From Chara braunii (Eukaryota > Plantae > Charophyceae), in NCBI GenBank assembly GCA_003427395.1, contig BFEA01000006.1, positions 2,419,337 to 2,483,336 of the forward strand: DNA of 64,000 nucleotides, given 5' to 3'. Made by a program: the position numbers and the translations under genes. The notes under the pieces are model-generated. The model ran no database searches and was not told where the DNA came from. It worked only from the letters and a program-made list of their open reading frames with translations. Positions 1-63,934 of this stretch are shown piece by piece; the stretch's first letter is position 1; the number at the start of each line of letters is the position of its first letter.

Positions 1-814
1 ATGAAGTCTAAGGGACAAGAAAGGGGAGGCGAGAGATCTTTTACGTGAACCCGACCTTGGGTCTTATCTGTAGTTAGACTCCCCTTCCCAATTTGACCCT
101 GATACTCCGATCGCTTCTCATACACCATTCACTGACCCAACATTCAGCTCACTGACATGCTCGTCCACACTAACGGGAGTGGACGGTACGCCACGCGACG
201 ATGACCCGATCACACCCAGTTCTAGAAAAGCTTAACCACAATCACATCCTGGTTGTACTTAATTACGAGTCCAGAAACCTTTACAACAAAAAAAATCAGG
301 ATCACGCATGGTTTAACAACTTCAAGAGCTAATATAATCTGTGACTTAGAACCTAAAAATCCAAGGGACGCATTAACGGTCCCCTCGCATCTGTTTTGCC
401 TAGCTTACGTTTTCTTGCACGTTCACACTGACCTTCTTCGAACACTACTTCACCTTCCCACTGACGTCGTCATCACCCATGCTCATTGTCACTCCTCACC
501 AGTGCATCGCTCAATTACATTTGCACACATCTCGCTACTGGTTCCTTTGCATCCGTTCACCACACGGACGATAATGAGTATAATGCCCCACCAATCATAC
601 ATTTGACAGTTCCGAGCGTGCAAGTTGAGTTCTCATCTGCTCAGAGGTAACCATGTTAACTACAACAAGTCCATGCGCTGGTGCGTGAGAGCCGACTACG
701 ATTAGGGTGAGAAGTGAAGTGATGCACAATCCTTGGTGAGTTGCCGCAAGCGTCAGCGAAAACGAAAGAGATGACAATCCCTTGAGTCAAGTCAGACTGT
801 CCTTCACGCAAACC

Positions 815-818
<4 letters not shown>

Positions 819-874
<56 letters not shown>
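819..874. repeat. (CT)n microsatellite, expanded relative to the right repeat copy
   Basis: About 27 CT units here; only a short CT run at the homologous site near 18891-18908. Confidence 0.9.
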
Positions 875-876
<2 letters not shown>

Positions 877-2151
877 GTCTCGTATGTCAGACATCGGAGG
901 GGTAATTTTAATGAACGCTCCTACAATGATTGAGTAAGGTACTAATGATGGAAAAATAAGAGAAAACGGGTATCTTCCTTAGCCATAGCGAGGATCCGGT
1001 ATTTCCAGTGGCATCGCGCGTGCCAACCAATAAGCGAAATTTGGTGTCTACAAAGAGGCGACACTCTGTAGTTACCCAGCAGGAGACTGATGATGTTGCC
1101 CTATGAAAATGTATGCCCCCGCAAAAGAGTTGTACACGTGGCTCGTTGCTATCACAGGCAAGCAGGGAGACCATGTAGACAAGATAGTTGGTGACGACAA
1201 CGGCCCAAGAAGTACTCGTCTCTCTCTCTATCTACCTGTTTGACCTCCTTCCTGCCTACTCATGCGAACCACACACGTTACCAGTGCCCCTTCTCACCTC
1301 ACTTCTCTTATCACCTCCTTACTCCTAGTCGGGTTTTCAGCTTGCTCGAATACCATTCGTCTCCCACACTGACATCACCGTTCTGATCGTGCCTGACTGT
1401 CTTTTGGCCAGAGAGGGAGAGTCGTACGCCACACTAAGATTCTCGAGATAAAGGGGTACAAACGCGCCAATTAGATTTCTTCGTTTCTTGCTTAAACTCC
1501 TATCCCCTGGAACAATGTGAAAACCCATTATAGCTCAATACGCGCAGAACATCACGCGAGAACGTGAAGGCAGCAGTTGACGTCACCTGCACTGCGCTAG
1601 CTCGTGCTCCGCTCATCCGCGTCGTTCCCCTTCCGTTGACCCCCTTGTCACTGCTCCGGGGCTGCTACGTGTCATCGCCCGTACCTCCTCTCTAACTCCC
1701 ACATTCGAAAACTCTCGTGCTCTGCTTGCTCGCGGGATCAGCATTAACCTCTGCCATGGAGCTACGCTCCCCTTTGTGATTCCTCTCGCATGAGTTGACC
1801 TCCGAGGGACTTCTCTCTCTCTCCCTCTCGGTCATACAGTCCTCTATAACCGCCTCTCGCACGCCGTCCTCTACCAATCTCGAGTTCTCGATGGCCTAGT
1901 CCTCTCCTCACTCACGCCCTCAACACACGATGCCTCACTAGCAGTCCGGCCAGAGCACGCGCATTAACCCCTTCCCTCCTGCTCATTCGACGCGGCTACC
2001 ATAGTGGCCGCTATTCACTGCCCAACGAAGTCAGGTTGACGTCAATGAATAGTCTCTCGGTCGCCACCGCTTGCGTCCCTCTCACTCTCTGCGTCTTTTT
2101 CACACGTGTTGACCTCTGGGGTACTCTCTCTCTCTCTCCCCCACTTGTCGA

Positions 2152-2775
2152 TCACACACCTTTCTTTCCTTTACCTCCCGCCTTTTCTGTCTCGTGCCCT
2201 CTTGGACTCCGCTGTCGCGAGCTGGCCTCGGGCCCGCCTTCCACAAGCTGTGCCTGGGGGTGTTTCTTGCGAACCTGGTCCGACCTATTCCAAGATTGGA
2301 GATCGGTCTCCCAGTCTCCAGCCTCACTCATCTCATTCTCTCCCCCTGAGTCCCTGTCCAGGTGGGCCTGTTCTCGGCCCACCGTGTCTGCTGAGGTCTC
2401 AGTCTCATGATATGAGACCATTACTTGCATCCTCGCCGTCACCCCGTCTCTCCTGCAGCATCGCTCAGCCCGATCCTTGGCTTCCTTAATAGCATCTTGC
2501 AGCCTCGGGTTAGTCCTCATTTCCTCCTCCTTAGCCCCTTCCACATTAACCTTTAGTCTCAGTTCATCTCCCCCATCATAATTGAGCAGCACCGTAATCC
2601 AGGGCCCTTCCCCAGACATGGGCTTCCAGCGAGTCTGGAGGTACCAGTAGCCTAGTGTATAGTCGTGCAGTGCCATAGCCAGACTTTTCTCAGCATCCCT
2701 TGCACCAGCCAAGCCTGCCGCTCCTGAGTAGTCAGGACCAAACCACTCAGCGCGTAAGCAAACGCACACTGGCAA
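2152..2775 (-). CDS. Hypothetical 207-aa ORF in the segment unique to the left repeat copy
   Basis: Open frame with globular-looking composition (LHDYTLGYWYLQTRW...WITVLLNYDGGDELRLKVNV); weak resemblance to the leader repeat domain. Confidence 0.35.
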   Translation of the reverse strand: MPVCVCLRAEWFGPDYSGAAGLAGARDAEKSLAMALHDYTLGYWYLQTRWKPMSGEGPWITVLLNYDGGDELRLKVNVEGAKEEEMRTNPRLQDAIKEAKDRAERCCRRDGVTARMQVMVSYHETETSADTVGREQAHLDRDSGGENEMSEAGDWETDLQSWNRSDQVRKKHPQAQLVEGGPEASSRQRSPRGHETEKAGGKGKKGV

Positions 2776-4030
2776 TCTCTCGTTCGCCCGCTAAGGTCGC
2801 CTAGCCTTCTACCTGGAATAAGCCAGTACTCAGCATAGCGAGGTCACTTAGGCCTAGCTTGCTAATGCCAACCTCCTTTTCCTCTTATAAAATTTTCGCC
2901 TACCATGATCCCCACGCTCTAGACGAGGAATCAAACTAATAAATTCAATTAATAAAATAAAAGAAAATACTCTATTAAGAGAAAAAAGTTAAAACCCAAC
3001 AGACAACAGGGAAAATTAAAAGTAGTACGCCAACGGTCGTAGTGCCAGCCTTTGCACGAAAGGACCCCTACGCTTAGCGCGATGGTCCCATAACGGGACC
3101 CCGACCGACGTTCCCCTCGCTTTAAAATGAACCACCGGCCTATCTCTTTCGGGTACTCGTGTCCGATGGCAAGGAGGGGGTTGATGACCTCCTATAAGGG
3201 GTGATGAGCTTCCTACCGATGCGGCCGCGGGTCGCCCCTCTTTTGGGGCCCTTTTTCGCAAAGCCCTGTCAGACAGGCCTGGCACAGGGAATCAGCGCCA
3301 AAATTGGGCCAGTCTGAACCATCAGACGAGGATCGCGCTTCAGAATTGACCCGTTGCCACCTTGAGATGACAGGCCAAAGGAAATCCGAGTCTGACAATT
3401 CGTGCAGGAAGGAAAATCAAATAATAATAATAATAATGATAAAGGGAAAAAGAAAACTCAGCGATACCGTGACCAGTTGTCGCTGGATTACTTCGAATTA
3501 AAACAACAGCCTTGATCTGCGCGCCCACTCTGACGCTCAATTTTCTTTTCGCTTTTACATTTTGTTTCCTTTCGTTTTCTTTTGTTCAACCTATTTTCTT
3601 TTTGACAGTGACCTGTTTTCGTGTACCTATCCCATAACCTATCCAGGGAGCGATTGGCGCGCAGCAGAAACGACAGCACCAATTTTTTCATCTTCGCGTC
3701 CCAGGGTGAGCCCGGCGGCTACCACAACCACAGGCCGGTAGTGTTCTGCTGTACAGTAGGGCGCTGAGCCTGCATGGACCAAAGGAAAGCCCTGTGGCGC
3801 ACCCTTTTGTAGAGGGCAAGCACCTACAGGCCGGTCCATTCCAAGACACCACCCCAGTATCTCAGCATTATTGTGGAGGTTAGGCAACGGACTAAGCCAC
3901 TACACGTCCGAAGCACCGGTACCAATCAGAGACTTGGCGCACAAAGGAGGGCCGGGACACCTCGCCCCTCGACATGATACCAAACCCCCACCCAGTGTCC
4001 CCGTTGGGTTGAAACTCGTGGGGCGCTTAG

Positions 4031-4037
4031 TATAAAG
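4031..4037 (+). promoter_or_regulatory. Putative TATA box for the antisense ORF
   Basis: TATAAAG about 25-30 nt upstream of an initiator-like CTCATTCA, followed by a pyrimidine-rich leader and CACC-ATG at 4307. Confidence 0.45.
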
Positions 4038-4306
4038 CAGCGCTTAGTTTAAGACTCTCATTCATCTTTTGCGTATCGCCGCGACTCGTCGTAGTATTTT
4101 GCGGTCGTCAACCTTTTTATGTCGTAGCATCTTCTTCTCTCTTTCTCCTTCTTTACACAGCGTCTTCTTCTCTTTCCTTCTCTCTCTCTTATCGTGCATG
4201 CGACATCGCTGCGTGGTCTACGCCGCTACCTTTGCCCCCTTTGTAGCTTCCTTTGTTGTTCATCTCTCTCTGTTTCGTCTCCTTAATCAGCGCTCGATCT
4301 CACACC

Positions 4307-4819
4307 ATGCCTGAGGCTCGTAGGGGACAGGGAAGAGGAAGGGGTGGTAGAGGAGGGAAGGCACGTGAAGAGTCGCCGGCTCGTGCACGGCGCGAATATA
4401 GTTCGGAGGAGGAGGAAGACGAGCGACATGGCTATGGTGCTCAGTCGAGACCTTACCCTCGCCAGTCACTGCCAACGTGGTGCGAAAGAACTCCATCCCC
4501 AGATAAGATGGAGTACTTCCATAAGAAGTTCGATGCTCGCTACGGCGCGCCCAACACTTCCTCTCCTCCCTATACTCCCAGAGCTCCCATCACTCCCACG
4601 ACGAGTAGAGCCCTGGTAACCATCCCTCCTGCTCTATGCACAGCTCCCTCTATCCCTCATCCCAATGGTTGTACTCTTTCCTACATCTTCTTCCTTCTCG
4701 TCTTACTTCAGGTTGAGTTCATGATTGTTTTCTATATCCTGTACAAACGCAATTTCCTCTCGAATTTCTATTTTTTTTTTTTTTTTAAGCCCTATAGTGT
4801 CCCTGGCTTGAGCGTTTGA
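4307..4819 (+). CDS. Gypsy antisense accessory ORF, 170 aa (RGG N-terminus, acidic tract, Pro-rich linker, C-terminal hydrophobic helix)
   Basis: Intact frame from CACC-ATG; protein-level homologue at 38546-39064 (GRGRGGR.GK, EEEE, W.E..PSP..M.Y...K....YGAP, hydrophobic-QVE). Confidence 0.75.
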   Translation: MPEARRGQGRGRGGRGGKAREESPARARREYSSEEEEDERHGYGAQSRPYPRQSLPTWCERTPSPDKMEYFHKKFDARYGAPNTSSPPYTPRAPITPTTSRALVTIPPALCTAPSIPHPNGCTLSYIFFLLVLLQVEFMIVFYILYKRNFLSNFYFFFFFKPYSVPGLSV

Positions 4820-5077
4820 ACACCTTAAAGTCGCGGATGCAGGTTCTTCGTGAAACAGGCCGCTTCTCGGCCACCAAAATAAATTTAAGAAGGATTATGT
4901 TCTCACTTTCTCGTTTGCTGCTAGTTCTGACCTCTTGTCATTCTGAAATCTGTTCTCAATCGGAATTTTTATAGCAGAACAAGGTTACCTTAACCTTCAC
5001 TTTGACTGTAAAATCGAAACATTGTCAGTCTGATACCAGTGCTTGGGACACTTGTCCAATCTGCCACTTTGGGAGTA

Positions 5078-5250
5078 GGGCATACCAAACCCATTTCCTG
5101 CTCTCTGGCTTGATGAAGATACCTTCCCAACTTCTCAAGTGACTCAGGGGATACCAAACCCTGTTTTCTTTTTCTGGTACGAGTGAGGCGTCTCCTAAAC
5201 TCCTCAGATAAAAGGAATGGGATACCAAACCCTTGTTCTTTTCTCTGGTC
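5078..5250. repeat. Three copies of a ~30-nt motif (GG.ATACCAAACCC...TT.....TCTGG) at ~70-nt period with unrelated spacers
   Basis: ATACCAAACC at 5082, 5151 and 5222. Confidence 0.8.
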
Positions 5251-6340
5251 TGGGAACTTCAAATAAGTATTTTTATAACTGCAAAACAGTGAGTTACACA
5301 AACAACCAGATTATGCAGGCTCCCTGTCAATTAACAACCAAACAACAAGTAAACAAAATAAAACCCCAAAATAAAATAAAATAATAAAATAATAAAAAAT
5401 AATAAAATAATAGACATAATAAGACAATCCTTCACACCCAAGAGTTATTGATTGCCTTGATTTTGACCCACCACTAGCCAAGAATGACAGACGTCCCGTC
5501 AGTCTGACATACCTCATTCGGCCCGCCTCAGGTCGAGACTAGTCAGACCATTTGCCTTGACAACCCCTTTGACCTGCCTCCAGATCAGGACCAGCATACC
5601 CACTACTCGAGTATGGCAGCCTTTTGGCACTCTTGCCAGGACACCCAGACTATAGCGGGTCTGGTCACCCTATGACAGTAGACCTCCCGTCAGTCAGAAA
5701 GTCCCGAACCTGGATTTGACCACTGCGGTCGGGGACTGGCTCACCCACCAGTTTTTGGCCTAAGGCGCTGGTTGCCTCGATCAGATTTTTGAACGTGGGA
5801 CCCGGTCTAACCACGGTTCCAGGCTCTGGCGAACCTCACTGGATTGCATCCTTTGACTGCGGTAGGGTTTCAGCTAACCCCTTTCGACCTCATAGATCAG
5901 ACCCCAGAGTCTTAGCCTCAGTTGACTACGGAATTCGACACTCGCGTCGGGGACCTGCTGACCCCACCAGATTGCAACCTATTGCGGTAAGGCTCTGGCT
6001 GACTCCGGCAATCAATGCATCTTTAGGTTAAAGAAGAAGACCCCAGGCACAGACAATGAGACAAGCATATCATAACCCACAAGCAGACTGCCCATGCCCC
6101 ATAACATGACGAACACTTCTCAAGAGACATCACTTCAGTGTCAAGAGGGACTGAACAGCAACATGATAACCGGCACCAAGCCCTTACAAGAAACTTCCCT
6201 TCATTCTCAAGAAGGATGCTTAGTGCTGGCCCCAGAGAGGTCCCTTCCCTCAGCTGGGAATTTCTCTTCCAAGAGACGTCCCGTCAGTCCCAAAGAAATA
6301 CTGAAATGCTGATCTAAGAGAGGTCCCCTCATCTGAGTGA

Positions 6341-6530
6341 AGACAGACAACTTAGTTAAGAAACACAAAGCCCCTCTAGCGACAACTCTCAGTCAAGTAA
6401 AGTTGGACTTCTTTATGCCTGTCCTCGTCAGAATTTCTTGGATAGACAACTTAGTCAGAGACACGAAGTCCTTCTGCTGACAACGCTTAATCAGACAGAA
6501 CTGAACTTTTTTATGCCCATCATGCTTTTC
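6341..6530. repeat. Degenerate ~99-bp tandem duplication in the Gypsy 3' region
   Basis: AGACAACTTAGT...GACAAC...TTTATGCC occurs twice. Confidence 0.6.
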
Positions 6531-6849
6531 TCTTTATCATATGAATAATATTAATTACATTTTCTGATGTGCCACAACCATGTGTTCCACGGATCTTTAA
6601 CACTGCGTCAATGCTCACAAGAACTGTATCTCACAGTTATTTGGAACTTAGCACTTATGGATCGATTGTAGCACTGCATCAAGTATATAGTCTTATTAAC
6701 TTCATTGCTTACTGAAACATAATATTAATTGACATGCTGGAAAATTGAAATGGCGAGCCATGCAAAAATGATCATAGTCTGCCGAAAATTCAGTCATGTT
6801 GTCTCATTGTCTTACTGTACTTTTATCTCAGTTCTCTGGAACTGTTCTC

Positions 6850-9800
6850 TCACTTGGATGACTGACCTTTCTTTCCTCTCTTTGAGATCAATGTAGGGAT
6901 CGGATCACGGTCTCTGAAAATGAACTTACGAAGTCTTGACCTCGATACCATGTCATGAACCCTGGATCCATCAATTTTTGATATCTCATAGACTTTGCTC
7001 TCTGCTTCTCCTGTAATTCTGTAGGGACCAATCCATCTGGGTTCCAATCGTTTAGTTCACTGAGTCTCAAGAGAACTATCGAACAGAAGGACAATGTCAC
7101 CAAATTTCAGTTTCTCTTTTCTTATATATCTTTTCTTGTTCCATCTCTCTTGATCTGACAATCTGCTGGATGTCATTCTCTCTGCAGCATCCATCATTGC
7201 TTGATCAATTTCTGATAGTTGTCTTATTCTGATCTGGTGGAGCTCTGAAATATAGTAGTCTCTGTCACTTTCTTGACTTGACCATGTCTTGACTATGTTC
7301 TCAATAGGCAATGTAGCATATCGGTCATACCACAAAGTAAATGAAGCATAGTCAGTAGTCCTCTTGACTGTTATGTTGTCAGCATAGACAACAACTCTCA
7401 ATACTCTTGGCCAATTATTGAGATTTCCTTCACACCACTTGGCCAATGAATCTTTCAAGGTCCTGTGACCTCTTTCGACTGGTGCATTCGCTTGAGGATG
7501 GTAAGTAGTCACATACCGAATTCTGACACCCAATCAGAGAGTGATCCTTCTTACAATCTCATTTCTAACCTCTGATCCTCTGTCTAAGACAAACTCTCTG
7601 ATGAAAGGATACATGAGATAGGCTTCTTCTATCCAGTCAGCCACTTGCTCGGTTGTCTTCCTTTTCATACCTTTTGCCTCAACATATCCAGATAAATTAT
7701 CTCTCATGTTCAATATATATCTCATCCCGCCCTTGCCTAATGGCATGGTGATGAGATCTAAACGAACTCTGTTGCCTGCTTCTACCAAAATAGTGGAAAA
7801 TAAAGGTTCAATCATTCTTGTGGTAGACCTGTTCTGACATAACACACATGATTTACAAAATTTGAAAATCATGTCTTTCATGCCAGGCCAGAAGTAGAGT
7901 TCGACAGTCTTAGAGTAAGTTGCCTCAGCAGCTCTGTGGCCACCTGCAACCCCCTCATGTAGAGCAGCAATTATCTATAATTGTCTCTCTTTACCACAGA
8001 CCACTCTTAGTAGAGGTAGTCCCCTTTTTAATCTGAACTTCTTCCTTGAATTTTTACAATAATATTCCTTTAGCTGTTCTCTTTCCATCTTCTTACCAAT
8101 CTCTTGATAACTTTCATCGTATTCTTCAGAAATGAAAAATATCTCTTCCTTCTTCTTTTCACCTTCTTTTTCTTCCTTTGAACCAGAGTTTTCCCCCATT
8201 TCATGAGCAGTCACTGCTGCAGCGTTAACTCTAGCATACCAATCATTTGACTCATCATTTTTCTTTTTCCCAAGAATTGACTCATAAATATAGGCATGAG
8301 GGATCTCTCCCCAACTGTCTCTCTCGTCATGCCACAAACTCCACTTATAGAAGCGTGGTACTTCATCATCTTCATCATCCTCATTCAAAAATTTATCAAC
8401 ATAGGCTGATTCTTCAATCGATCCGTTTACATCTTCTTTTTCTTCCTTTCTCCACTCAATCCGGCTTAGGCCATCTGCTCTGTTCTTCTCAGTAAAAATC
8501 TTTTCTAGCTTAAAATGAAAAGTCCAGATGAAGGCAATCCACCTGCTGACTGTTGGATCTACTTGCTGGTGCTTCTTAATGACACCAATCACAACAGATG
8601 CATCAGTCCTCAGGATGAATCTCCTCCCTAGTACATAGTGCCTGAAGCATCTGAGGCTATGAATAATCGCCAGCAAGTCTTTTCTGAATTGAGTATATCC
8701 TCTTTCTGTAGAGTTAAGAGTCCTGCTCTCAAAGCTCAGAGACCTCTCTTTCTCATTCTCATCTTTCTGAATTAGCACACCACGCAGAGCAACTGGTCCT
8801 CCATCAACCTCAATGATGAAAGGTCTCCCTTCCTCATCATCATAAAAAGACACTCCTGGCACTACACCCCCATCTTTTAATTTCTCCTGTAGAGTTTTTG
8901 CAGCGACTTATCTTTTCTCATTCCATGCTGAATTAACCCCTTGCCTTACCATCTCCCTCAGAGGCTCTGCAAGGGTAGCAAAATGAGGAATAAAAATCCT
9001 ATCGAATCCCCAGACACCCGAGAAGCTCCTGACATCTGTCACTCTCTTGAGTGGCAGGGGACAGTTGAAGATCTTGTCTATGTTTTTGGGGTCAGGACTT
9101 CTAACCTTGGAGAAACATCTAAAGTCCAAGATGATTACTTCTGGCTGAAAAAGAAGAGACTTCGATCCACTGGCAGCCTGGTTATATTTTTGAAGTCTCT
9201 CTATGACCATTTTCACTCCTTCAGCGTGTTCCCAGACAAACTTTCTGACTCCACCTGCGACTAAAGTCTCATCCCTTACTAGGGGTCCTTTCACAGGGTT
9301 GTCATCAATATAGGGGCTGATTATTTCAGGAAAAATATCTTGCATGATTTGGAGCATATCCCTTTGAACCACTGCCACACCATTAGTTCAACCCTGAGGT
9401 ACCACACACATCTGAATGAGTCCTCTTGGCGTGTGCATGACATTCATTGGCCGACTAGTGGGATCAATGAGAAACTGATCATAGTCAGAATATAAATCAA
9501 CTAAGGAATAAATGCATCGACCAGCAAAAGATTCAGAGAGGAGATCTGCATTAGGAAGACTACCTTTGTCACATACTGTCACAGAGTTGAGTTTCTGAAG
9601 ATTCTGTATCCATCTGAATCCACCCGCTGGTTTCCAAAATAAAACCAGTGGTTAGCATACGGTCCATCAGCAGGTTCAACAACGTTAGAAGCAATCTTTT
9701 TGTCAAGATATTTTACAACCTCTTCTTCTTCTTTCAGGGCATACTTGGTCGGCCTATAATTCCATGGAACATGATCAACTGTCGAAATTTTGACCATCTT

Positions 9801-10945
9801 GATCATATCCACATCCAACCGCCCTCTCTCTTCATCATTAAAGGAGAATGCACCTGAGAATTTCTGACAGATTTTGAAGATATATTATTTCTCTTTAGGC
9901 AGGATAACCTGATCCGAGTCTATCTTCATTGTGTCAAATCTCTCTTTGGTGACCCTATTCCCTAATTTTGCAGACTCTCTCAATGCTTTAATAATCTTTT
10001 TTTTTTTTTTTCAGTGCTTCATCATAATCCTTTTCTGTTAGGACTGCCACCGACTTTTTCTTCACCCCCTTGGGCTTATATTTTCTCTTTGACCTAGTGG
10101 CTATTTTCCTAAAAAAGGATGAGTCGATGCAAATTTTAATTACATTTTTCCTCCCTTAGCAGTCTCTACAACTTTCGTAAATGCTTCAATTGTCCATCTT
10201 CATCTTTGAGATAACCAAGGGCCTTTATCATTTTTGAAACTTGATTAATAGCCACTGAAATTTCTTCTTTTACCTCTTGTTTGCCTTCTTCTCTCAGTCT
10301 CCTAATCTTTTCAGTAGACTCTTCCTTTCTGATTGAATTAGCAGATAATCGATGTTTGAAATCATTTTTAGTGCAGACCATAAAAGTGTGTTCCTGAGCA
10401 GTCTCAGGATCTTGTAGGTCGATCCAAGAGGACCCCTTATGACCGAAAAATTGGACAGCCTCCATTCTATGCAAGAATGAAGTGCCAAAAATACAATCAT
10501 GGTCCAGTTCCGACACTACAAAACCCAATAGTTCAACTTACATGGTCCCAACCCTGATAGGCAGATTGTCAATAAACCCTGCCACAAAAAACTCTCCTGC
10601 AATATCACTCAGTATGTTTTGTGCAGGTCTATCAATAGATAAGTCGCAAGCCTCCATTGTTCTCCGAGAAAGGAGTATCATCTCTGCCCCAGAGTCCACT
10701 AAGGCTCGAATTTTCACTTGATTAATATAAATGGTCAGGTGTCCGCATCCCATGGTTGCAAATCTCATCTTGCAACCTGACAGTGATCTGTTCACCTGAC
10801 TGAAAAAGATTGATCTCAAATAATTAGCCTCTAATTTATTCTTCTCTATCAGCTTCTCTAGCTCTTCTCTCAGCTTAGGTGCCAGAGTCATTGCTTCTTT
10901 GAAGGACAGGGTCTCTTTTGTCTCTTCCAACATTTTAGTAATCAC
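6850..10945 (-). pseudogene. pol: Gypsy pol (protease, RT, RNase H, integrase) broken by stops and frameshifts
   Basis: PR: ALVDSGAE. RT: SLVDLYSDYDQF and PYIDDNPVKGP. RH: IEVDGGP, FESRTL, LRTDA, RADGLSR. INT: HHCC (LHEGVAGGH...CVLCQ), DLITMP, LDRGSE, HPQANAPVERGH, PRWIGPY. Confidence 0.95.
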
Positions 10946-37429: not shown

Positions 37430-37912
37430 AATCCCATGCCAAAAATAGCACGGGAATGTGCTAATTTTAGCACGGGACTGAGACAGGCCCAATCCCAGTC
37501 CCAAGTAGTCGACGAGTCAGTCCCATGCGAAAAATAGCACGGGACTGTGCTAATTTTAACGCAGGACTGGGACAGGCCCAGTCCCAAGTAGTCGAACAGT
37601 CAGTCTCGTGCCAAAAATAGCACGAGATTGTGCTAATTTTAGTACGGGACTGGGACAGGTCCAGTCCCAAATAGTCGAACAGTCAGTCGCGTGCCAAAAA
37701 TAGCATGGGAATGTGGTAACTTTAGCACGGGACCATGACAAGCCCAGTCCCAAGTTGTCGAACAATCAGTCTTGTGCCAAAAATAGCAAGAGACTGTGCT
37801 AATTTTAGCACGGGACTGGGACATGGTCAGTCCCAAGTAGTCGAACAGTAAGTCCCGTGCCAAAAATAGCATGCGATTGTACTAATTTTAGCAGGGGACT
37901 GGGACAGGCCCG
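37430..37912. repeat. 83-bp minisatellite, about 6 copies, each with two internal hairpins
   Basis: AAAAATAGCA at 37441, 37530, 37613, 37696, 37779 and 37862. Confidence 0.9.
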
Positions 37913-38545
37913 ATCCTGAAATATGAAGGGTTGGTCCCATGCTAAAAAATAACTCAAGGCCCCTTTTAATTATTACAAGGGTGTAGTTATTCTTTTACCT
38001 GGCCGTTTGGGGCTGTTCCTTTTCCGACCTGGCTATGCGGTCGCATCGGTCCGGTCCCACATGGTCAAACTTAATTTTCTCACTAACCTAAGGTACGATC
38101 AGGCCCCCATTAATTCAGCCCTTGTGGTCACGACGGTCCAGCCCAAACGGACGATCAAGTCACCTGCGGGTTATACCGCTGCACTGTTTTTTCCGTAGTT
38201 TCCGTGTCGGGAATTAACTGACGCGTTAGCTCCCGGCTGACTCTAACCGATGGTGGTTTTTGGTGCAGATTTGGCATGACATGGAGGCTGACCACGTTGA
38301 GTCAACTTCCGATGACGCGGCGCGTCGGCTTCCGAAAACCATACCGAACCCTATTCCTGGCGTCCTCGCTAGGACTTTGCTGCGATAAGAACTGATGACT
38401 CCGTCATCTATCATTTACGTTGAGTTCCCTAACTCGGGTATGTAGCGTTATCGTGCTTTCGCGACTACCGTTGTCATCGTTGTTCCCGGCCTACTTGCAT
38501 TCTCTCTGCACTTGCACCAGTTTCGCTTAGTAGTCCGCTTTCACT

Positions 38546-39064
38546 ATGCCACCGAAGATGCACGGTTCGGGTGTTGGACGAGGGAGAGGTGGTCGTCAGG
38601 GGAAGGCAGCCAATCGGCCAATAGACCTCACGTACGAAAGGGAGACGGCAGAGGAGGAAGAGGAAGAGGAGGAGGAGAGATCAGAAGGGGTGCGGACCGT
38701 ATGGGTGCGTCGTCGCCTAGAGGACTGGCACGAGCACAAGCCATCACCGGGGAGGATGGCATACTATTCCTACAAGTACGAGCAGCACTATGGTGCTCCG
38801 CCCCCTCGCTTTGACCCTCCTTCGAGTTCACACCCTTCACCATATCGCTCTTCTTCCTCCGCTCAGCCTCACCCTCGCCAACTCACCATCCTTCTGCAGT
38901 CGCCTCGCCCTGCGCCTCTGCCGCCACGCGTGCCAGATCCACCCGCTGCCCATCAAGCCACGCCATCCGACCACCGCCTGTGCATCTCAGTTGTGCTCTT
39001 TTTCATATGCCAAGTCGAACTATGCAGGCTCATAGGTTACTTAATATACAGAGGCGTCATATAA
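38546..39064 (+). CDS. Gypsy antisense accessory ORF, 172 aa, homologue of 4307-4819
   Basis: Intact ATG-to-TAA frame with the same motif order and nearly the same length as the first copy. Confidence 0.75.
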   Translation: MPPKMHGSGVGRGRGGRQGKAANRPIDLTYERETAEEEEEEEEERSEGVRTVWVRRRLEDWHEHKPSPGRMAYYSYKYEQHYGAPPPRFDPPSSSHPSPYRSSSSAQPHPRQLTILLQSPRPAPLPPRVPDPPAAHQATPSDHRLCISVVLFFICQVELCRLIGYLIYRGVI

Positions 39065-40289
39065 AATAAACGTCCATTCATTAGGGTGCTTGCCCGTAAG
39101 GGCTTGAGTACTTACTCAATAAGGCATGGACCTCAGGTCCAAGCCACCATCAAACTCAAGAAGCATCAGTCTAGTCAGTCCTGCGTTGCAAGACTACCGC
39201 GGGTAAGTACCATCTCACAGATAGTCCAGTTCATATCAACTCAAGTGGTCTGATCATAATGTCAGTCCTATTTTGCGCATCATCCAATCAATCCCAATCA
39301 TCTGACTAGACCCCTCATAATGTTAAGTCCAGTAATCCATATACTAGCCCAACACAGGCAACTCGTCCACAGAGTCCCTCTGCTCTCAGCGCATCATCAT
39401 CAATCAGCATAGTCATCATCAACCTCTCAGGCCTAGCTAGGTCATCGGTGGATATGGGACCAACCGTCGAATTCAGGACCATCTGGCCTTGATCTGGGTC
39501 ATCTTGGCCAAAGGTTGTCTCATAAGGGGGGAACAATGGAACATACCAAACCCCTTTCTCTTTGTCTGCCGACTTTGCGTCAATCATTGTCAGGTCATAC
39601 CAAACCTCGTTGTCTTCATGTGGTTGTAGGGTACCTGCAAAACAGAGGTCAAGTCGTGCAATAAAAAAAGACGAGAAGAGGCTCTCCCCTAAAGACCCTT
39701 GCCAACACCCCTTCCTCACTCACCCTCATGGTCTTACCCCTCGGCGTTCTAAGAGTGTTCCTGCTTACCCTGGTGGGCTTCCCCGCTGGCCCAACCCCGC
39801 AAGCAGAACAAAGTCAGCCCTGATTCCCAGTCAGCCCTTGCTCAGAAAAGCTAACGAGGAGCCGCACACCCCTTCGTGAAGCCCTCACTTCTATGAGTGT
39901 CGACCCATCGTTCGGATGCTCATTAGTCGATATCAGAGCTCCATTTGCTCGCTTGACTTCTTCCGACCACCCGACTCTTGCTATATGTGCAGGGAGCTAG
40001 CCAACACCTAACGAGACCGTACTGGTGATTCAGAAGAGTCCACAATTTAAGCTTAATGACAGTGGACTAGGAGGCCGTAATCCCCACGGCTCTCTCGTCG
40101 GCTGGGCAATGGATACCTTGCTTGCCCCGGCGCCAAGGGAATATTCCTAGAGACATGGCTCCCGAGAAATATCCTAAATCAGAGTGCTAGTAGGAATTTA
40201 TCGCCTTGATCAACCAATTGTTGGATTTTGACTGAGAGAAGCTCAGGATGCCTCCTTCCTTTCCGGCACTAAGGCCGAAGGGCCGCCGC

Positions 40290-40460
40290 CTGGCGGCGCC
40301 TATGGTCGCCTCTTCAATCTCTCCGTGTGGCATATGAAAAAAAACTTGTAGTCCAGAGCGGATTAGTTTAAGAATCCGTTTATCTCGGATTGTTCGCCGG
40401 ATGATCTTATACAGAGTTCCATGATTTACGGCTCCAGGGCCTACGTCCCGGTCTGAAGCC
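40290..40460 (-). pseudogene. Group II intron maturase/RT fragment
   Basis: VNHGTLYKIIRRTIRDKRILKLIRSGL...GEIEEATIG fits the .NH..L...I...I.D.RIL.LI...L pattern between RT subdomains 3 and 4. Confidence 0.65.
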
Positions 40461-40658
40461 ATGTGAATAAGTGGAAAAGCGGGGTTCATAAATAGGTTCT
40501 AACATCATTCTATAAGTAAGTACATATTTCAAATCTTTTTTTTTTATTGACGATCATGATAGTTGGTTTCATAGAAACTCTTGAAAATCAATCATCAAAC
40601 ACATAGATGGGCGTCCCGCCATGTTTTGCATGATTGAGTCTGTTTAGTTTGAAATCAA

Positions 40659-40738
40659 GCTCACTTGGTGAAAATGGTAAACACGACAGACTTAAAATCT
40701 GTTCCTACGGGTTATCCGTTCAAGTCCGATAGTGAGCA
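40659..40738 (+). tRNA. trnL: tRNA-Leu(UAA), organellar type, probably a non-functional nuclear copy
   Basis: Acceptor stem GCTCACT/AGTGAGC; anticodon stem ACAGA/TCTGT with loop CT-TAA-AA; long variable arm; TTCAAGT T-loop with one T-stem mismatch; no intron. Confidence 0.85.
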
Positions 40739-40739
40739 T

Positions 40740-40816
40740 ATTCGCTTGGTGAAAATGGTAAACACGACAGACTAAAACACTTTGTTGGTTCGAGCGAGTC
40801 GGGACCACGACGAATA
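40740..40816 (+). pseudogene. Degenerate second tRNA-Leu-like sequence
   Basis: Repeats CTTGGTGAAAATGGTAAACACGACAGACT; the anticodon arm and T arm are disrupted. Confidence 0.55.
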
Positions 40817-42811
40817 TAACTTAATAGGTCAAAGTGTCAGATTGTGACGTGGTGACCTGGGAACAGCTAACCACCTGAGGGTTTGAAGTTGTCGGCCACG
40901 GTGGCTCGGACGCTCCGTCAACCCAGCTAGCCTCGGAACATCTGAAATCTTGCTTCCGAAAATCATCTCTTGCGCAAGACGCACAACTGAAACTCCCTGC
41001 CCCTTCACGATGGTTCTGAGAGCTGACACCAAAGTGGACGCCACTGATGTTAGACCCTCGCCAGTGAACCGTTGCGAGAATCCGACAGCTGTAGTTGGAA
41101 CACCCCAACCATTGCGAAGAATGCAGTAAACTCCAATCTGTTGCGATGCTTGGAAATCTTCGTTTCGACCTCAACGGGTCCAACAGATCACCCCATTGAT
41201 TCTGGCACCTGACTGACTACCTATCCCTTTAGAGTCTGGTAGTCAGGGTTGTCGAGCCCCAGGACCCGGGCCCCGCCGGGGGTCGGGGGATCCGGGGTTC
41301 CGGGGGTGGGCAACCCCAACCCCGGCNNNNNNNNNNNNNNNNNNNNNNNNNNNNNNNNNNNNNNNNNNNNNNNNNNNNNNNNNNNNNNNNNNNNNNNNNN
41401 NNNNNNNNNNNNNNNNNNNNNNNNNNNNNNNNNNNNNNNNNNNNNNNNNNNNNNNNNNNNNNNNNNNNNNNNNNNNNNNNNNNNNNNNNNNNNNNNNNNN
41501 NNNNNNNNNNNNNNNNNNNNNNNNNNNNNNNNNNNNNNNNNNNNNNNNNNNNNNNNNNNNNNNNNNNNNNNNNNNNNNNNNNNNNNNNNNNNNNNNNNNN
41601 NNNNNNNNNNNNNNNNNNNNNNNNNNNNNNNNNNNNNNNNNNNNNNNNNNNNNNNNNNNNNNNNNNNNNNNNNNNNNNNNNNNNNNNNNNNNNNNNNNNN
41701 NNNNNNNNNNNNNNNNNNNNNNNNNNNNNNNNNNNNNNNNNNNNNNNNNNNNNNNNNNNNNNNNNNNNNNNNNNNNNNNNNNNNNNNNNNNNNNNNNNNN
41801 NNNNNNNNNNNNNNNNNNNNNNNNNNNNNNNNNNNNNNNNNNNNNNNNNNNNNNNNNNNNNNNNNNNNNNNNNNNNNNNNNNNNNNNNNNNNNNNNNNNN
41901 NNNNNNNNNNNNNNNNNNNNNNNNNNNNNNNNNNNNNNNNNNNNNNNNNNNNNNNNNNNNNNNNNNNNNNNNNNNNNNNNNNNNNNNNNNNNNNNNNNNN
42001 NNNNNNNNNNNNNNNNNNNNNNNNNNNNNNNNNNNNNNNNNNNNNNNNNNNNNNNNNNNNNNNNNNNNNNNNNNNNNNNNNNNNNNNNNNNNNNNNNNNN
42101 NNNNNNNNNNNNNNNNNNNNNNNNNNNNNNNNNNNNNNNNNNNNNNNNNNNNNNNNNNNNNNNNNNNNNNNNNNNNNNNNNNNNNNNNNNNNNNNNNNNN
42201 NNNNNNNNNNNNNNNNNNNNNNNNNNNNNNNNNNNNNNNNNNNNNNNNNNNNNNNNNNNNNNNNNNNNNNNNNNNNNNNNNNNNNNNNNNNNNNNNNNNN
42301 NNNNNNNCTCGCGGCGGGGGTCCGGGGCTGAAACCCCTACCCCGACTTGGGCCCCGGGGATCCCCGTGTGACAACGCTGCAGTGGTAGTGCCCCATTATC
42401 AAGGCCAATTTGGCGAGGAAGAAAAACATATTTTTACTTTATCTCACGACCAATCATTCCACCTACCAAAGGCAAGAACTGAAATCCCATAAACTGGTTC
42501 TCAATCCCCCAAGCATATCCCCAACACTCAATACATGATAAGCCAGATACAATGCAAGTAACTAAAATTTAAAATTTAATTCACAGTCACAACAAAACAG
42601 GGGTCAATCTAGGTCCGGTAGATACACGAGTCTACCACTGAATGCTGGTCAATAAATCTCTGGGACCACCTGGGTCCAGTAGACAACTTGAGTCTACCCC
42701 TAAGAGTCGAGTCATCATAGGCTACTCGTATCCAGCTCCAGCCTACGAAATCATTGCACAGTCGTCCGTAAGTTTGTCAAGTCGACTTTCAGCTGCAATT
42801 CGCGGATCACG

Positions 42812-43090
42812 GGGCACGTTCCAACACATCCGCATCATCCATAGCTGGCGGCACACGGGCGACGTCCCAACACATAATCATCATCTATAGTCAGCGACAC
42901 ACAAGCCACGTCCCAACATATGATCATCATCCATAGCTAGCGGAACACGAGTCACGTTCTAACACATAATCATCATTCATAGTTGGCGGCACACATGCCA
43001 CGTCCCATAAGCATTATAATCCCGAGGTCGGCGGCACACGGGTCACGTCCCAACCTATGTCGGGGGCACACGGGTCATGACCCAACATGT
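42812..43090. repeat. 46-bp tandem repeat just 3' of integrase
   Basis: ATAG.T.GCG..ACAC...CACGT.C.AACA units near 42841, 42887, 42933 and 42979, then truncated units. Confidence 0.85.
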
Positions 43091-43269
43091 CCAAGTCAGA
43101 GTTGAACGGCTCACAGGCCTCGCTCCAACATCCTGTCCGAACTCAGAATCAAGTCCGTATCTCTGAGTATAAATTTTCAGAGTCGGGAGACGGATGCTAT
43201 ACCGTAGGATTTTCTGCCATCAATCTCAGCCAGCTCATAAGCCTTGCCTTCGACTTTCATCATGATCTT

Positions 43270-44270
43270 GAATAGTCTCATCCACCTAACTTCCAATCTC
43301 TTGGTCCACTATGTCTCGAGAGATGTATCATGCAGAAGTACAATATCCCCGACTTCAAGTCATTCATTTTTGATGTACCTCTTGTTGTTCCACCGTGTCT
43401 GATCAAATAACCCGTTGTCTGGCATCCTCTTTGTGGCCTCAATTATAGCTTCATCCACTTCCTTAATCTGTCTGATCGTCAATCTCAGCAACTCCTCTGT
43501 GAAGTATGACTCACTCTGCGTCTCATGGGTTCATGTCTCGATTAGGTTTTCAATGGCAGAAGCAGTATACCAACTGTACCAGAGTGTGATAGGTCTAGAA
43601 CCCATAGTCCGTTTGATACTCACATTGCCTATATAGACAACCACTCTGAAGAAATATGGTCAGTTCTTAGAGTCACATTGGCATCATTTCGATATCTCAT
43701 CCTTTATTGTTTTGTGACCTTTTTCAACTGATGCGTTAGCCTAAGGATGATATGGCGTCACAAATCTGATTCTGACCCCAAATCTGAACATAAGTTTTCT
43801 GACCATCTTATTCTTGAACTCTAATCCTTGATCAACCACGAACTCACGTATGAAGTGGTATTTTAAGTAAATTTCCTCGATCCAATTTGCTACTACCTTT
43901 GAAGTTTTCTTACGGATGGTCTTAGTTTCAAGATAACCAGACATGTTATCTCTCATATTCAATATATATTTCATTTCATCCTTATCAGACAACATAGTAA
44001 TTAGATCAAGGTAAACAGTACTACCAGGCACAACAAGAACAGTGGGGTATAATGGTTCAATCAATCTCCTAGATGACCTTTCCAGCCAGGCTTCACAAGA
44101 CTTACAGTATCGCATAACCATATCTATGAGATCATTCCAGTATTCTAGTCTAGACACTTTATAGTGCATCACATCAACACCCCTATAACCCTTGCCAGAC
44201 TTTCATGCATCTCAACGATCACCTCTAATTGCCTTTCCTTACCTCACACCACTCTCAGCGATGGTAGTCC
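43270..44270 (-). pseudogene. Gypsy integrase remnant
   Basis: YLDLITM, YILNMRDNMSGYLE, FIREFVVDQG and GVRIRFVTPYHP align with the element-1 integrase (7057-7881). Confidence 0.9.
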
Positions 44271-44619
44271 TTCCTTAGCATCCAAAAAAAGGTGAACCCG
44301 TAGTCTAAAAGTCTTTTTTTTCCTCTCATGGTAGAACTCGTCAAACTGATTATTGCTCATTACCACACCAATCCTCTTATTTTCTCCATCATATTTTTTT
44401 TTCCTTCAATGTCCTCACTTTGCTCCAGGTCATCCAACCCATCTCAAATTTCATCCAACCGACGTCCAACCGTCCCTGAACTCTCAACTAGCTCGCGGGC
44501 AGGGACAACGACTCGTTCTGCCATCTCATACCACCCTTCCTCCTCATCCTCTTGGGCCACAGGTAATAAAGGTAGGGATCTTTCTTTCCTCCCCAGCAGT
44601 CCTCTCTACCTGTTTCCAT

Positions 44620-47600
44620 GGCTAAGGCCGAAACTAAAAAGCGAAATACGGCCCCCTCACCGATGAATTCTGCGATAAAACATATTTGGAACTGTTCCCT
44701 ATGCTGGACACAAGCGCCTCCCTAAAGACTGTACTGGAAAAGGGACTGCAACCCGGGGTGAGGTGGACGGAAGCATGGCACAGACCGACAACAATAATTT
44801 TTACACGATTCCTGCCACCACCAACATCAGCACAAGCAGCAGCAACAACAGACACAGGACAGGAGGGAGTCAAGGCTGAGACAAGGAAAAAACATGAAAC
44901 CCAACACCCGGCTCCACCGCCACGCCCGGACCCCCCGAACCCGGATGAGAGCGCACCATTAGATCTGCTGTGGAAAAGAAGACTCAAACAACTGGCTGAG
45001 ATGGGGCGTGGCGCCGGCCCGCTGTCGCAAAATGCTATGCTGCTTATCCCAATGCGAAAGAAAAACGAGAAAGGGAGGTGGGCTTGCTCCCAGAAGAGAA
45101 TGGCAAACGGGGGCCGTCACGCTCCAAAGTTGGTCGTCCTTTTGGGCGGAGCCACAAAACAGCCAATCTGATGCGGCGACAAAAATTCTGCAAATGAAAC
45201 TGGAATCTCACATTGCTGAATTTCTGCCGCCAGGAGCACAAGCCATGGCCACGATCTCAAACAGCCCCACACGCATAGCACAGAGGAATGTCTATATACG
45301 CTACGACCCGACCAAGGAGGCGGGCATGAGCTGGCATACCCGCGCCCAAATGTGAAATCTACCAATAGTCAAGATTGGACACAACGACACCTGGACCGAA
45401 CAAGATGTCCAGAGATGTCTACGTGCTCTCCTTAGACAGGGCCAGGACTGGGATTGGGACCAGCTGCCGTGTTCCCGCCTGTATGAAAGAATTAAAGGGG
45501 TATCATGAATAATGCAAGCAAGATTGACCCGGTCAGGGCCGTGTATAGGAAAGATCGCATCTGAAACCAATGCAGGAGAGCGGCTGATCTGGACCTGCGC
45601 TTGTTGAATGTGAACGACCTCGCCTCCTGTAAACCAGATAAACAAAACGCAATCTGGGACTTGATGAAAGGAAAGGGGGGACGAGACTGACCAGGTATAG
45701 TCTGCGTCCAGGAAACACACCTAATGGACACCCCAGAGCACAATCGCGCTCACAAAATGATCTGGTCATACCGTGCCTTCAGGGTCCATGCCCCGAAACC
45801 TGGAAGTGTCGGGGTGGCCATCTGGATCCCCCCGGAGTCCCGGGCAGACCCGGTTCACTGGGTGACGGACCAAGAGGAAGGCAGGTGGGTATCTATCCTG
45901 GTTACGTTGGAAATCGAAATTGTATGTATAGTGTGTATCTACGCCCCTAACACAGTAAACGAAAGAAGACTCTTCTTTGAAAATATCAAAGCACAAATAT
46001 CGGAAGGGGTCCCGGTCATTATAGCAGGAGACTCCAACGCAGCCCCGGATCGATGGATGGACAGATGGCGGACCCCCTCCCCGGCCCCGGTGTACGTGGA
46101 GGAGGATGAGCGGATGATCAATGATTTATGCCTCTCACTGAAACTTTTTGACTCCTTCCGGAAATTGAATCCAGATACAAGACTTTACTCATATTTAAGG
46201 AAGACCGGAACTGAAAGCCAGTCAAGATCCACTCGGGCCTTGATCACAAAATGTGTACGGTCACTCTATCCTTTCGAAAGAAACCCGATTGGGGACCGGG
46301 CTTCTACAAACTCAACACCTATATTTTGCAACAGCAAACCTTTTACAGCTACATTGCGGACTGCTGGAACTACTGGCACATGCAAAAACAGCACTTCCAA
46401 CAGACAACAGACTGGTTCAATAACAGCCTGTTTTACCTGCGTAAGAAATGCCAAGAATGTTCTAAACTACTGGCAGTCAAAAAACATCAACAGGAGATGG
46501 AGTTACATCAACAACTGCAACAACTTGAGCAACAGGACCAGCCTAGCAACACCCAAAATCTACCATCCGAAGTATACTAAACAATGCAGACACTGAGACA
46601 GCGACTCCAGACCTTTGCCACACAACGTTGGGAAGGAGCACGAATAAGAGGACGAATGTCAAAGTACCACACAGAAGGAACAATGGATAAAAGATTCTTT
46701 AGCATGGCTCGTGCACGCTCGCACAGAACAACCATCGAAGCGCTATATAACCCACAAACTGGACACCAAGATATCATCACCTCTACCCCCCATTGCGCAC
46801 AAATAGCAAGATCCTTTTTCCAAGACCTATTCACCTCGAGGTGCGCCCGACAGGAGAGGAATGCTAGGGAGAAAGAAATTGGGGAGTTCTTGGTACCACT
46901 GGAGAAGACCGTGATGGGCCAGCAAAAAATGGATCTGGATTGTCCTCTGTCCAAGGAGGAGATATGGACGGCGATGTTGCAGATGGAAGAAGAGAAGACG
47001 TCGGGCATTGATGGGTTTCCAAAGGAATTCTGGGAGACCTTCTGGGCTCAGATGGCCCCGGACCTGATGGAGTTCTATCAGGAGGTATGGGAAACAGGGA
47101 GCATGGGGGAGCTGGTGGGTCAGGGAGTTCTCACTTTGTTACACAAAAAGGGAGACAAGATGGACATTCGAAACTACAAACCTATAACTTTGCTCACAGT
47201 CGTCTACAAAATGTTAGCAAAGGCCCTGGGAAATCGGTTGTTCCCGGTCTTGGAAGACATTATCCATCCAACGCAAACCGGGTTCATCAAAGGGCTCAGG
47301 ATCCACAATAACATACTATTAGTTAATGAACTACTCAAGTTGACAAGACAGGACAAACAGAGTGTAGCCGTGGTCTTCATAGACTTTGAAAAAGCCTATG
47401 ACCACGTGGACTGGCTATTCCTAGACAAATGTATGGAGAAAATGAACATAGGGCCATTTTTTCCGCGTTGGACCACAATATTGCTCCAAAATGCAACCAC
47501 GAGTGTTCAAGTCAACGGAAGGATCGCGCCACCCTTCCCACTGCAGCAGTTGGTCCGCCAAGGGGACCCCCTGACACCCTTCCTGTTTATAATAGTGATG

Positions 47601-50115: not shown

Positions 50116-50649
50116 NNNNNNNNNNNNNNNNNNNNNNNNNNNNNNNNNNNNNNNNNNNNNNNNNNNNNNNNNNNNNNNNNNNNNNNNNNNNNNNNNNNNN
50201 NNNNNNNNNNNNNNNNNNNNNNNNNNNNNNNNNNNNNNNNNNNNNNNNNNNNNNNNNNNNNNNNNNNNNNNNNNNNNNNNNNNNNNNNNNNNNNNNNNNN
50301 NNNNNNNNNNNNNNNNNNNNNNNNNNNNNNNNNNNNNNNNNNNNNNNNNNNNNNNNNNNNNNNNNNNNNNNNNNNNNNNNNNNNNNNNNNNNNNNNNNNN
50401 NNNNNNNNNNNNNNNNNNNNNNNNNNNNNNNNNNNNNNNNNNNNNNNNNNNNNNNNNNNNNNNNNNNNNNNNNNNNNNNNNNNNNNNNNNNNNNNNNNNN
50501 NNNNNNNNNNNNNNNNNNNNNNNNNNNNNNNNNNNNNNNNNNNNNNNNNNNNNNNNNNNNNNNNNNNNNNNNNNNNNNNNNNNNNNNNAGGAGGGAAGCC
50601 CCCATCGTCGTCTTCCATAAAAAATTTGTCGACGAAGGGCGCTTCCTCT

Positions 50650-63731: not shown

Positions 63732-63934
63732 TTTCGAAAGCCGAAGTGGCAATTGGTGACTGCCCCTTCTTCAACCCAGAAGATCAGGCGATATTCACAT
63801 CAGCGTAGGATCGTACCGCAAAACAACAACGAGATTCTACTTGCAGGCTCAGCAAGGCCCCTTTTTGCCCCTGTAGGACTTTATTCTCACCTGCACAAAA
63901 ATAACACCTGTAAGCACGGAATCGTTGGGCCACT

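Follow-up and report, generated by a model that had tools for sequence, protein, structure and literature searches.

What does an open reading frame (ORF) represent when it lies beside the broken genes of a dead retrotransposon: a stretch that happens to be free of stops, or a protein that these elements have kept? The question is raised by positions 4307-4819 of a 64,000-nucleotide stretch of the genome of the charophyte alga Chara braunii (assembly GCA_003427395.1, contig BFEA01000006.1, positions 2,419,337 to 2,483,336; this whole stretch is called the window below), repeat-rich eukaryotic DNA with several N gaps. A first-pass annotation, made from the sequence alone, paired this ORF with a second at 38546-39064 and proposed a family-wide, independently transcribed, tail-anchored RNA-binding protein encoded antisense in Gypsy elements. 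Here we analyze these two ORFs together with a third copy from another Chara scaffold. The three are very probably a real accessory gene of these elements, and the gene is a new, lineage-restricted protein family of the giant Gypsy elements of Chara. The wider phenomenon, extra ORFs in long terminal repeat (LTR) retrotransposons, is already known, and the Chara gene is a variant of it.

Three copies of one reading frame

Three copies were examined, all of them in dead elements:

4307-4819, plus strand: copy 1, 170 aa from its ATG and 188 aa from an upstream TTG
38546-39064, plus strand: copy 2, 172 aa from its ATG
L001:10001-10513, on Chara braunii scaffold BFEA01000961.1: copy 3, with one in-frame stop at L001:10343-10345

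Both window ORFs are present at the lengths first reported, and the claim that they align as proteins in regions with little DNA similarity was borne out. BLASTP gives a modest match between copies 1 and 2 (38% over 48 aa, E 6e-5). Their global protein alignment is colinear and recovers all features listed in the first-pass annotation: MP...GRGRGGR.GKA, a poly-E tract and a core W.E..PSP..M.Y...K....YGAP occur in both, and the alignment extends over a Pro/Ser stretch and a hydrophobic C-terminus that contains QVE and ends Y.[IL]Y[KR]. When a profile is made from copies 2 and 3 only and run against 2138 six-frame segments, it retrieves copy 1 (E 2.5e-11). Aligned with copy 2, copy 3 shows 55% identity (tblastn gives 47%), and its unspliced frame runs on colinearly to a stop at the same position as in copy 2. 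At the DNA level, a blastn comparison (E 1e-8) of window positions 36000-45000, which include copy 2, with L001 found no similarity. The flanks of the ORF copies are not alignable, the regions of copies 1 and 2 sharing only the non-coding decamer ATACCAAACC; the protein is therefore what was conserved.

The substitutions that separate copies 2 and 3 are specific to codon phase. In a protein-guided codon alignment, differences number 62, 43 and 112 at positions 1, 2 and 3 of 165 codons, and the proportion of nonsynonymous differences (pN) is 0.30 against a saturated synonymous proportion (pS) of 0.89. A MAFFT nucleotide alignment blind to the protein places 504 of 504 aligned bases in one codon phase, with indels that keep the frame and difference fractions of 0.38, 0.29 and 0.62 at the three codon positions (chi-square p 8e-10). 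Second-position changes are few within the transmembrane segment (3-8 of 27-28 codons), and tblastx prefers the ORF frame (1.5e-35) to the opposite strand (1.4e-9). Because the substitutions are codon-phase specific, the frame was under purifying selection, and the retention of the protein despite saturation at synonymous sites means that this selection acted over a long divergence inside the elements. Judged from these alignments, the three copies are homologous and were selected as a frame while the elements diverged. The codon-phase and profile evidence together support the original proposal of a real, selected coding gene carried by Gypsy elements.

We considered whether the three frames might instead be chance ORFs in low-complexity, C/T-rich DNA, their similarity reflecting composition or a conserved non-coding element. 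Simple tracts (RG, poly-E and P/S) abound in the protein, and the BLASTP match between copies 1 and 2 is weak. However, the profile E-value for copy 1, the codon-phase-specific substitutions, the frame-keeping indels, the strand preference of tblastx and the unconserved flanks speak against this explanation. Judged by the profile E-value and the codon-phase alignment, it is essentially refuted, and we find it hardly credible.

The openness of the frames carries less weight than was first given to it. Copies 1 and 2 are indeed open while the neighboring pol is broken, but at ~5% decay per copy (the LTR pair being ~90% identical) the probability of finding no stop over 510 nt is ~0.3 per ORF. 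Because of this value, and because copy 3 has a stop, openness beside a broken pol adds little and is not significant, and intactness does not serve as a sign of ongoing selection.

The first-pass annotation did not recognize the protein family, and database searches likewise assigned the protein to no recognized family. An exhaustive hidden Markov model (HMM) search of 1.84 billion protein representatives gave a single match, to GBG91865.1, covering its first 82 residues only (E 2e-12); this is a chimeric Chara gene model, considered below. Word-index protein searches with copy 1, and with a four-row alignment at E<=10, returned no match, and Pfam scans of copies 1 and 2 and of pieces of copy 3 returned no family at E<=0.01 or at E<=10. 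The PDB sequence search gave noise only (E>0.1), ESM Atlas features gave nothing usable for the ORF protein, and no relatives came out of back-translated pattern scans of JGI metagenome contigs and IMG/VR viral contigs. A literature search on tail-anchored proteins in LTR retrotransposons returned nothing relevant.

Predicted protein and gene model

The protein can be divided into the following parts, here given for the window copies:

4331-4363, plus strand: RG/RGG box of copy 1
4478-4552, plus strand: conserved core of copy 1 (W58-P82)
4685-4741, plus strand: hydrophobic C-terminal helix of copy 1, followed by a 25-residue tail partly encoded by poly-T
38726-38800, plus strand: conserved core of copy 2 (W61-P85)
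about 38978-39049, plus strand: C-terminal transmembrane helix of copy 2, with only 4 residues after the helix

From the N to the C terminus, all copies have an RG/RGG box, an acidic helix, a conserved core, a Pro/Ser linker and a C-terminal hydrophobic helix; the three features first named for the protein, an RG/RGG N-terminus, an acidic tract and a C-terminal anchor, are thus found in every copy, the anchor as a prediction from hydropathy and AlphaFold2 (AF2). The RG boxes, at residues ~9-19, read GRGRGGRGGK (copy 1), GRGRGGRQGK (copy 2) and GRGRGGRLGK (copy 3), with G9-K18 nearly invariant; copy 1 has a di-RGG, and copies 2 and 3 have one RGG plus RG. By sequence, the box, though short, falls within the clustered RGG/RG definition of RGG/RG-motif RNA-binding proteins. 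The acidic region is predicted to be helical at low confidence. The core spans ~30 residues, with the pattern W..PSP.[KR]M.Y...K....YGA in all three copies, and contains an invariant S-P-x-[KR] (PSPGR, PSPGK, PSPDK), which we take to fit the minimal consensus of cyclin-dependent kinase type. It is followed by a disordered linker of ~55 residues.

The AF2 model of copy 2 has no globular fold (overall predicted template modeling score, pTM, 0.22). It shows a core helix at residues 68-82 (predicted local distance difference test, pLDDT, ~80) and a C-terminal helix at 140-168 (pLDDT ~90), the remainder being disordered and the N-terminus polar. The best 19-residue Kyte-Doolittle windows, with means of 2.2-2.6, lie at residues 127-145 (copy 1), 145-163 (copy 2) and 142-160 (copy 3), leaving 25, 9 and 9 residues, respectively. 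A conserved Q-[VI]-E lies in the middle of the C-terminal helix, and RGVI or KKII alone follow the anchor in copies 2 and 3. The protein contains no second hydrophobic stretch or signal peptide-like segment. The predicted layout would be that of a tail-anchored protein, with a single transmembrane segment within ~30 residues of the C-terminus and a cytosol-facing N-terminal part. The transmembrane segment of a tail-anchored protein leaves the ribosome only after termination, so its insertion must be post-translational; in such proteins it is of the GET/TRC40 type or organelle-specific.

A different reading of the C-terminus is offered by the public model GBG91865.1 (CBR_g53845; 535 aa, Chara braunii), which spans L001:10001-18943. 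Its first exon is the N-terminal 81 aa of copy 3, and it splices after ...RRYG at a GTGCGT donor (L001:10243) to join two distant exons. The ORF could thus be the first exon of a longer spliced gene, in which case the C-terminal "anchor" would be intronic. We judge this to be very unlikely. Exon 2 lies in the gag of the element (DUF4100) and exon 3 is its post-integrase ORF, making the model chimeric; the donor is absent in copy 1; and beyond the supposed donor the codon phase is still conserved, second positions follow a hydrophobic pattern and the stop is kept. Because second-position changes are very few, the hydrophobic tail is not an intron or a read-through into the 3' untranslated region. 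An intron reading of the copy 1 C-terminus itself (CAG/GTTGAG, then poly-T and AAG) was likewise ruled out by the codon-position evidence, and weak matches to the tail at L001 ~27.8-28.0 kb proved to be poly-T low complexity. A literature search for the identifiers GBG91865.1 and CBR_g53845 returned nothing relevant.

Candidate expression signals flank the unspliced frame:

4031-4036, plus strand: TATAAA, 276 nt upstream of the copy 1 ATG
4878-4883, plus strand: AATAAA, at +59 after the copy 1 stop
39065-39070, plus strand: AATAAA, at +1 after the copy 2 stop

The TATA box reported earlier is present for copy 1 but is not conserved in copies 2 or 3. By comparison, AATAAA falls within 60 nt of three of three stops (in L001 at +27 after the stop of copy 3), where a background of 0.00065 per nt predicts ~0.04 per 60-nt window, which suggests a shared 3'-end signal after the ORF.

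Antisense and sense layouts in giant Gypsy elements

All close protein relatives found for the Gypsy pol of the window are Chara braunii proteins. Copy 1 lies in element 1, whose parts are:

1-3974, minus strand: 3' LTR, cut by the window start, with a 1.35-kb insertion at ~1750-3096; from the repeat pair
6898-12547, minus strand: broken gag-pol with Retrotrans_gag, protease, reverse transcriptase (RT), RNase H and integrase (integrase at 6898-7941)
14880-14895, minus strand: primer-binding site (PBS), a 15/16 match to the L001 and L003 PBS TGGCGCCGTTGCCGGG
14900-20675, minus strand: 5' LTR, ~5.8 kb, of which the repeat pair verifies 18054-20675 only
5082-5231, plus strand: ATACCAAACC array downstream of copy 1, with copies at 5082, 5151 and 5222 (~70-nt spacing)

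The LTRs form a direct repeat (1-3974 and 18054-20675, ~90% identical). The 3' LTR starts TGTCG (TGTCGAGG at 3974, minus strand), with a polypurine tract (PPT)-like GGGTGGGGG just before it. The U5 end is provisionally placed by the block CTGCGTGACA (14952-14961) and GCGACA just ahead of the PBS; the block AAATCCTGCGTGACA, 57 nt upstream of the PBS, also closes the LTRs of L001 and of a second Chara element, L002. The PBS match fixes the orientation of element 1 on the minus strand. The Chara PBS TGGCGCCGTTGCCGGGGA is presumably complementary to the 3' end of tRNA-Asp. The stretch with the LTR pair, PBS and gag-pol is contiguous, with no N runs, and because all three are set on the minus strand, copy 1 is truly antisense to the element 1 gag-pol. 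Its start lies 333 nt inside the U3 edge of the 3' LTR, and it reads inward. Further ATACCAAACC copies occur at the 3' LTR junction (3977-3986) and, twice, downstream of copy 2 (39543 and 39597); the decamer is absent from L001 and from the further Chara loci L002-L004, which were reached through pol homologs.

In L001, the gene is arranged differently. Copy 3 is on the same strand as gag-pol, and its ATG (10001), ~190 nt past the PBS, is the first substantial AUG after the PBS, with one 2-codon upstream ORF ahead. The surrounding features are:

L001:9791-9806, plus strand: PBS, an exact match
L001:10925-11707 and L001:12114-12896, same strand as copy 3: two 260-aa paralogous ORFs, 36% identical, with no Pfam match

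The sense order is copy 3, the two 260-aa paralogs (together a 5' accessory cassette), gag from 13186 and pol to ~18035. The LTR end, PBS, copy 3, paralogs and gag-pol are contiguous, with no N runs over L001:9021-18943, and copy 3 is the first sense ORF after the PBS. An LTR pair lies at L001:2972-4596 and L001:22243-23746, the second member running into a gap, and L001:9400-9800 aligns to the 3' end of the L002 LTR, running past the point at which the L002 LTR copies diverge and into the PBS; on this evidence the L001 5' LTR would be ~6.8 kb (2972-9788). Both layouts place the gene within a few hundred nt of an LTR edge, pointing toward the interior of the element.

Copy 2 is placed with less certainty. 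It sits 4.1 kb from the integrase end of element 2, with an N gap (41327-42307) between:

43147-44399, minus strand: element 2 integrase with the end of its RNase H (49-53% identity to element 1)

The order in element 2 is the same as in element 1, namely an ATACC[A/G]AACC-like motif, the ORF, a ATACCAAACC array and a minus-strand integrase, and an antisense layout is likely for copy 2 on the basis of this shared order.

The closest relatives of L001 by integrase (62-68% identity) are L002 and L004, both readable from LTR to LTR apart from 0.2-kb gaps:

L002:8259-10181 and L002:21880-23752: LTRs of L002
L004:3101-6685 and L004:16006-19925: LTRs of L004

Neither contains an ORF homolog (HMM, E<=1) or a comparable ORF on either side. 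L003, a related element that consists mostly of gaps, has no ORF homolog. Counterparts of the two 260-aa paralogs are absent from the window and from L002-L004. Because L002 and L004, both related elements, lack the accessory gene, the basic replication machinery can do without it, and its distribution is patchy. Several of the original claims change with these observations. The gene is not family-wide, since L002 and L004, the two related elements with a 3' region open to reading through, lack a homolog. An antisense position 3' of the integrase holds for element 1 and probably, across the gap, for element 2, but the L001 gene is sense and 5', and antisense orientation with independent transcription is consequently no general rule. 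Linkage to Gypsy elements is contiguous for element 1 and L001; for element 2 it is seen only across the N gap. We dropped an attempt to read recombination from the discordance between integrase and ORF identities, three taxa giving no topology.

The variable position and orientation, typical of transduced or recombined modules, and the absence of the gene from related elements could also indicate a captured host gene fragment, carried as a passenger and conserved through recent shared ancestry or through host selection before capture. We regard this as decidedly improbable. No host paralog was found in the 1.84 billion representatives, which include the Chara braunii proteome, the sole match being built on an element copy; and with synonymous sites saturated and the protein kept, selection acted during a long divergence inside the elements.

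Several minor features accompany these layouts. A tRNA-3'-half-like motif, GAGTTTCAACCCAACGGGGAC, lies at window positions 3990-4015 (minus strand), just upstream of the PPT, and another, GAGGTTCAACGCTCCCAACGGGG, at L001:9743-9777, in the U5 end of the LTR and immediately ahead of the PBS. A MAFFT alignment had suggested that the region upstream of copies 1 and 2 might be a degenerate "U5 end-PBS" leader such as is seen upstream of copy 3; this idea was dropped, as what matches (15/24) is the reverse complement of the PPT-adjacent tRNA-like motif and the orientation does not fit. Element 1 has minus-strand ORFs between the PBS and gag (14139-14552 and 13315-13620) and one in the LTR end (15629-16144); the ORFs of 13315-16144 have motifs in common, PYVKKG among them, and tblastx aligns them with one another. 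Neither these nor the L001 ORFs at 10925-11707 and 12114-12896 are homologous to the protein of copies 1-3.

Known systems, possible roles and the rest of the window

Extra ORFs are common in plant LTR retrotransposons, and almost none has a known role. The first-pass annotation pointed to Tat/Retand elements. The antisense ORFs of Retand elements code for TRP28 (PF04195), and reports of them come from flowering plants only (PMC11963269). Copy 1 resembles those ORFs in being an extra frame that runs antisense to gag-pol between the integrase and the 3' LTR, where short repeats share the long 3' region with it. A Tat/Retand relationship was not upheld, however. The Transposase_28 domain (PF04195, TRP28) was not found in copies 1 and 2 or in the pieces of copy 3 (Pfam, E<=10); the Chara protein has a tail-anchor architecture; it is 170 aa in length, whereas the Retand/Tat ORFs exceed 600 bp and reach several hundred aa; the gene also occurs in sense orientation at the 5' end of an element (L001); and its host is a charophyte. 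The antisense ORFs known so far (TRP28) are confined to flowering plants, and Chara is a streptophyte alga near the land-plant stem.

A survey of plant LTR retrotransposons considered only extra ORFs (eORFs) of at least 250 codons, treated side and orientation as lineage characters, and in algae found no Gypsy elements outside the chromoviruses (Neumann et al. 2019, PMC6317226). In its terms, the position and orientation of copy 1, and probably those of copy 2, are those of an eORF-3'R, and copy 3 has those of an eORF-5'F, so that one gene holds both positions. At 170-172 codons, the Chara gene is below the threshold and therefore invisible to that survey.

A second comparison is with the retroviral antisense genes HBZ (HTLV-1) and ASP (HIV-1), for which transcription from negative-sense promoters in the 3' LTR is established; HBZ is a nuclear basic leucine zipper (bZIP) protein, and ASP is a hydrophobic, membrane-associated protein of ~190 aa with a proline motif and two predicted transmembrane domains, overlapping env (PMC10186651). 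Copy 1 is likewise antisense to gag-pol and reads inward from the 3' LTR side, and ASP is also small and membrane-associated. The Chara ORF has no sequence relationship to ASP or HBZ; no sense gene overlaps it, and its one anchor is C-terminal. The likeness is a positional and architectural analogy, and use of an antisense LTR promoter in Chara is inferred only.

We propose the following role for the protein in its two layouts. The gene is, we think with moderate confidence, an accessory gene of a Chara-specific group of giant Ty3/Gypsy elements (LTRs of 5.8-6.8 kb) that encodes a tail-anchored protein, which may recruit ribonucleoprotein particles (RNPs). In the antisense layout, a short antisense transcript would carry the ORF, started either by a promoter of its own or by an antisense promoter that lies in the 3' LTR or just inside it; in the sense layout of L001, it would be translated as the first cistron of the genomic RNA. 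The protein would be inserted post-translationally into an endomembrane, where its cytosolic RG box and core may recruit element RNA or Gag-RNA particles, and this recruitment might concentrate assembly or shelter the RNP. The RNP-tethering role specifically is tentative, and we would call it doubtful on present evidence.

Several observations weigh against this account. The evidence base is three copies, each in a dead element and one with a stop. The linkage of copy 2 to element 2 crosses an N gap, the TATA box is found in one copy only, and the gene is patchy and dispensable. With one or two RGG plus RG, the RG box is a short one, and RNA binding is putative; the conserved Gln and Glu in the helix leave the target membrane, and even stable insertion, uncertain; and RNP tethering is read from domain architecture alone.

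The main alternative is that the protein is an element-encoded regulator and not an assembly factor, countering silencing or restraining the copy number of its own element. GRG repeats of the kind found at the N-terminus are substrates of arginine methylation. The RG motif might, for example, be a decoy for small-RNA machinery that depends on arginine methylation and Tudor domains. Under this hypothesis, the anchor would serve only to sequester partners. The gene is dispensable and missing from related elements, a patchiness typical of accessory and counter-defense genes, and the retroviral antisense genes are regulators (PMC10186651). However, no similarity in sequence or structure to a known suppressor or regulator was found (Pfam, PDB and ESM Atlas), and we consider a regulatory role unlikely overall.

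It is also conceivable, although we would not expect it, that the protein is a Chara-restricted, tail-anchored RG-box adaptor linking retrotransposon RNA or Gag particles to a membrane and encoded by a movable module, re-sited between the 5' sense and the 3' antisense sides of different Gypsy lineages, with the 3' copy expressed from the 3' LTR side in the manner of HBZ and ASP. On this reading, the protein would be the first membrane-anchoring accessory protein of LTR retrotransposons in the green lineage, and the two layouts would be the first sense/antisense "flip" of one gene among them.

RNP tethering, if true, would place a membrane-associated step in Gypsy replication outside the standard model. 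The two layouts amount to a natural experiment on the expression of an accessory gene: a polycistronic sense RNA would carry it in one, an antisense transcript started near the 3' LTR in the other. What is at hand is a small selected gene with a readable RG box and tail anchor, for which the public annotation, a chimeric model, is wrong.

The rest of the window holds further repeats. A long interspersed nuclear element (LINE) at 45724-49401 (plus strand), with three ORFs and Exo_endo_phos and RVT_1 domains, is inserted upstream of the element 2 integrase. ARAGORN calls a tRNA-Leu(TAA) at 40659-40738 (plus strand), in the element 2 3' region between copy 2 and the gap, and a tRNA-Ala(GGC) at 32924-33007 (minus strand); either could be a tRNA gene or the tRNA-derived head of a short interspersed nuclear element (SINE). 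A 589-bp direct repeat (49527-50115 and 58140-58728, 100% identical), whose first copy abuts an N gap (50116-50588), represents one of two things: a pair of LTRs from a very young element, or a duplication made in the assembly. Positions 50590-51010 contain remnants of RNase H/RT with homology to element 1. At 61278-63752 (minus strand), an 824-aa open frame overlaps a repeat with a 24-nt period, GGTGGCATTCC..., that is Gly/Pro-rich in translation.

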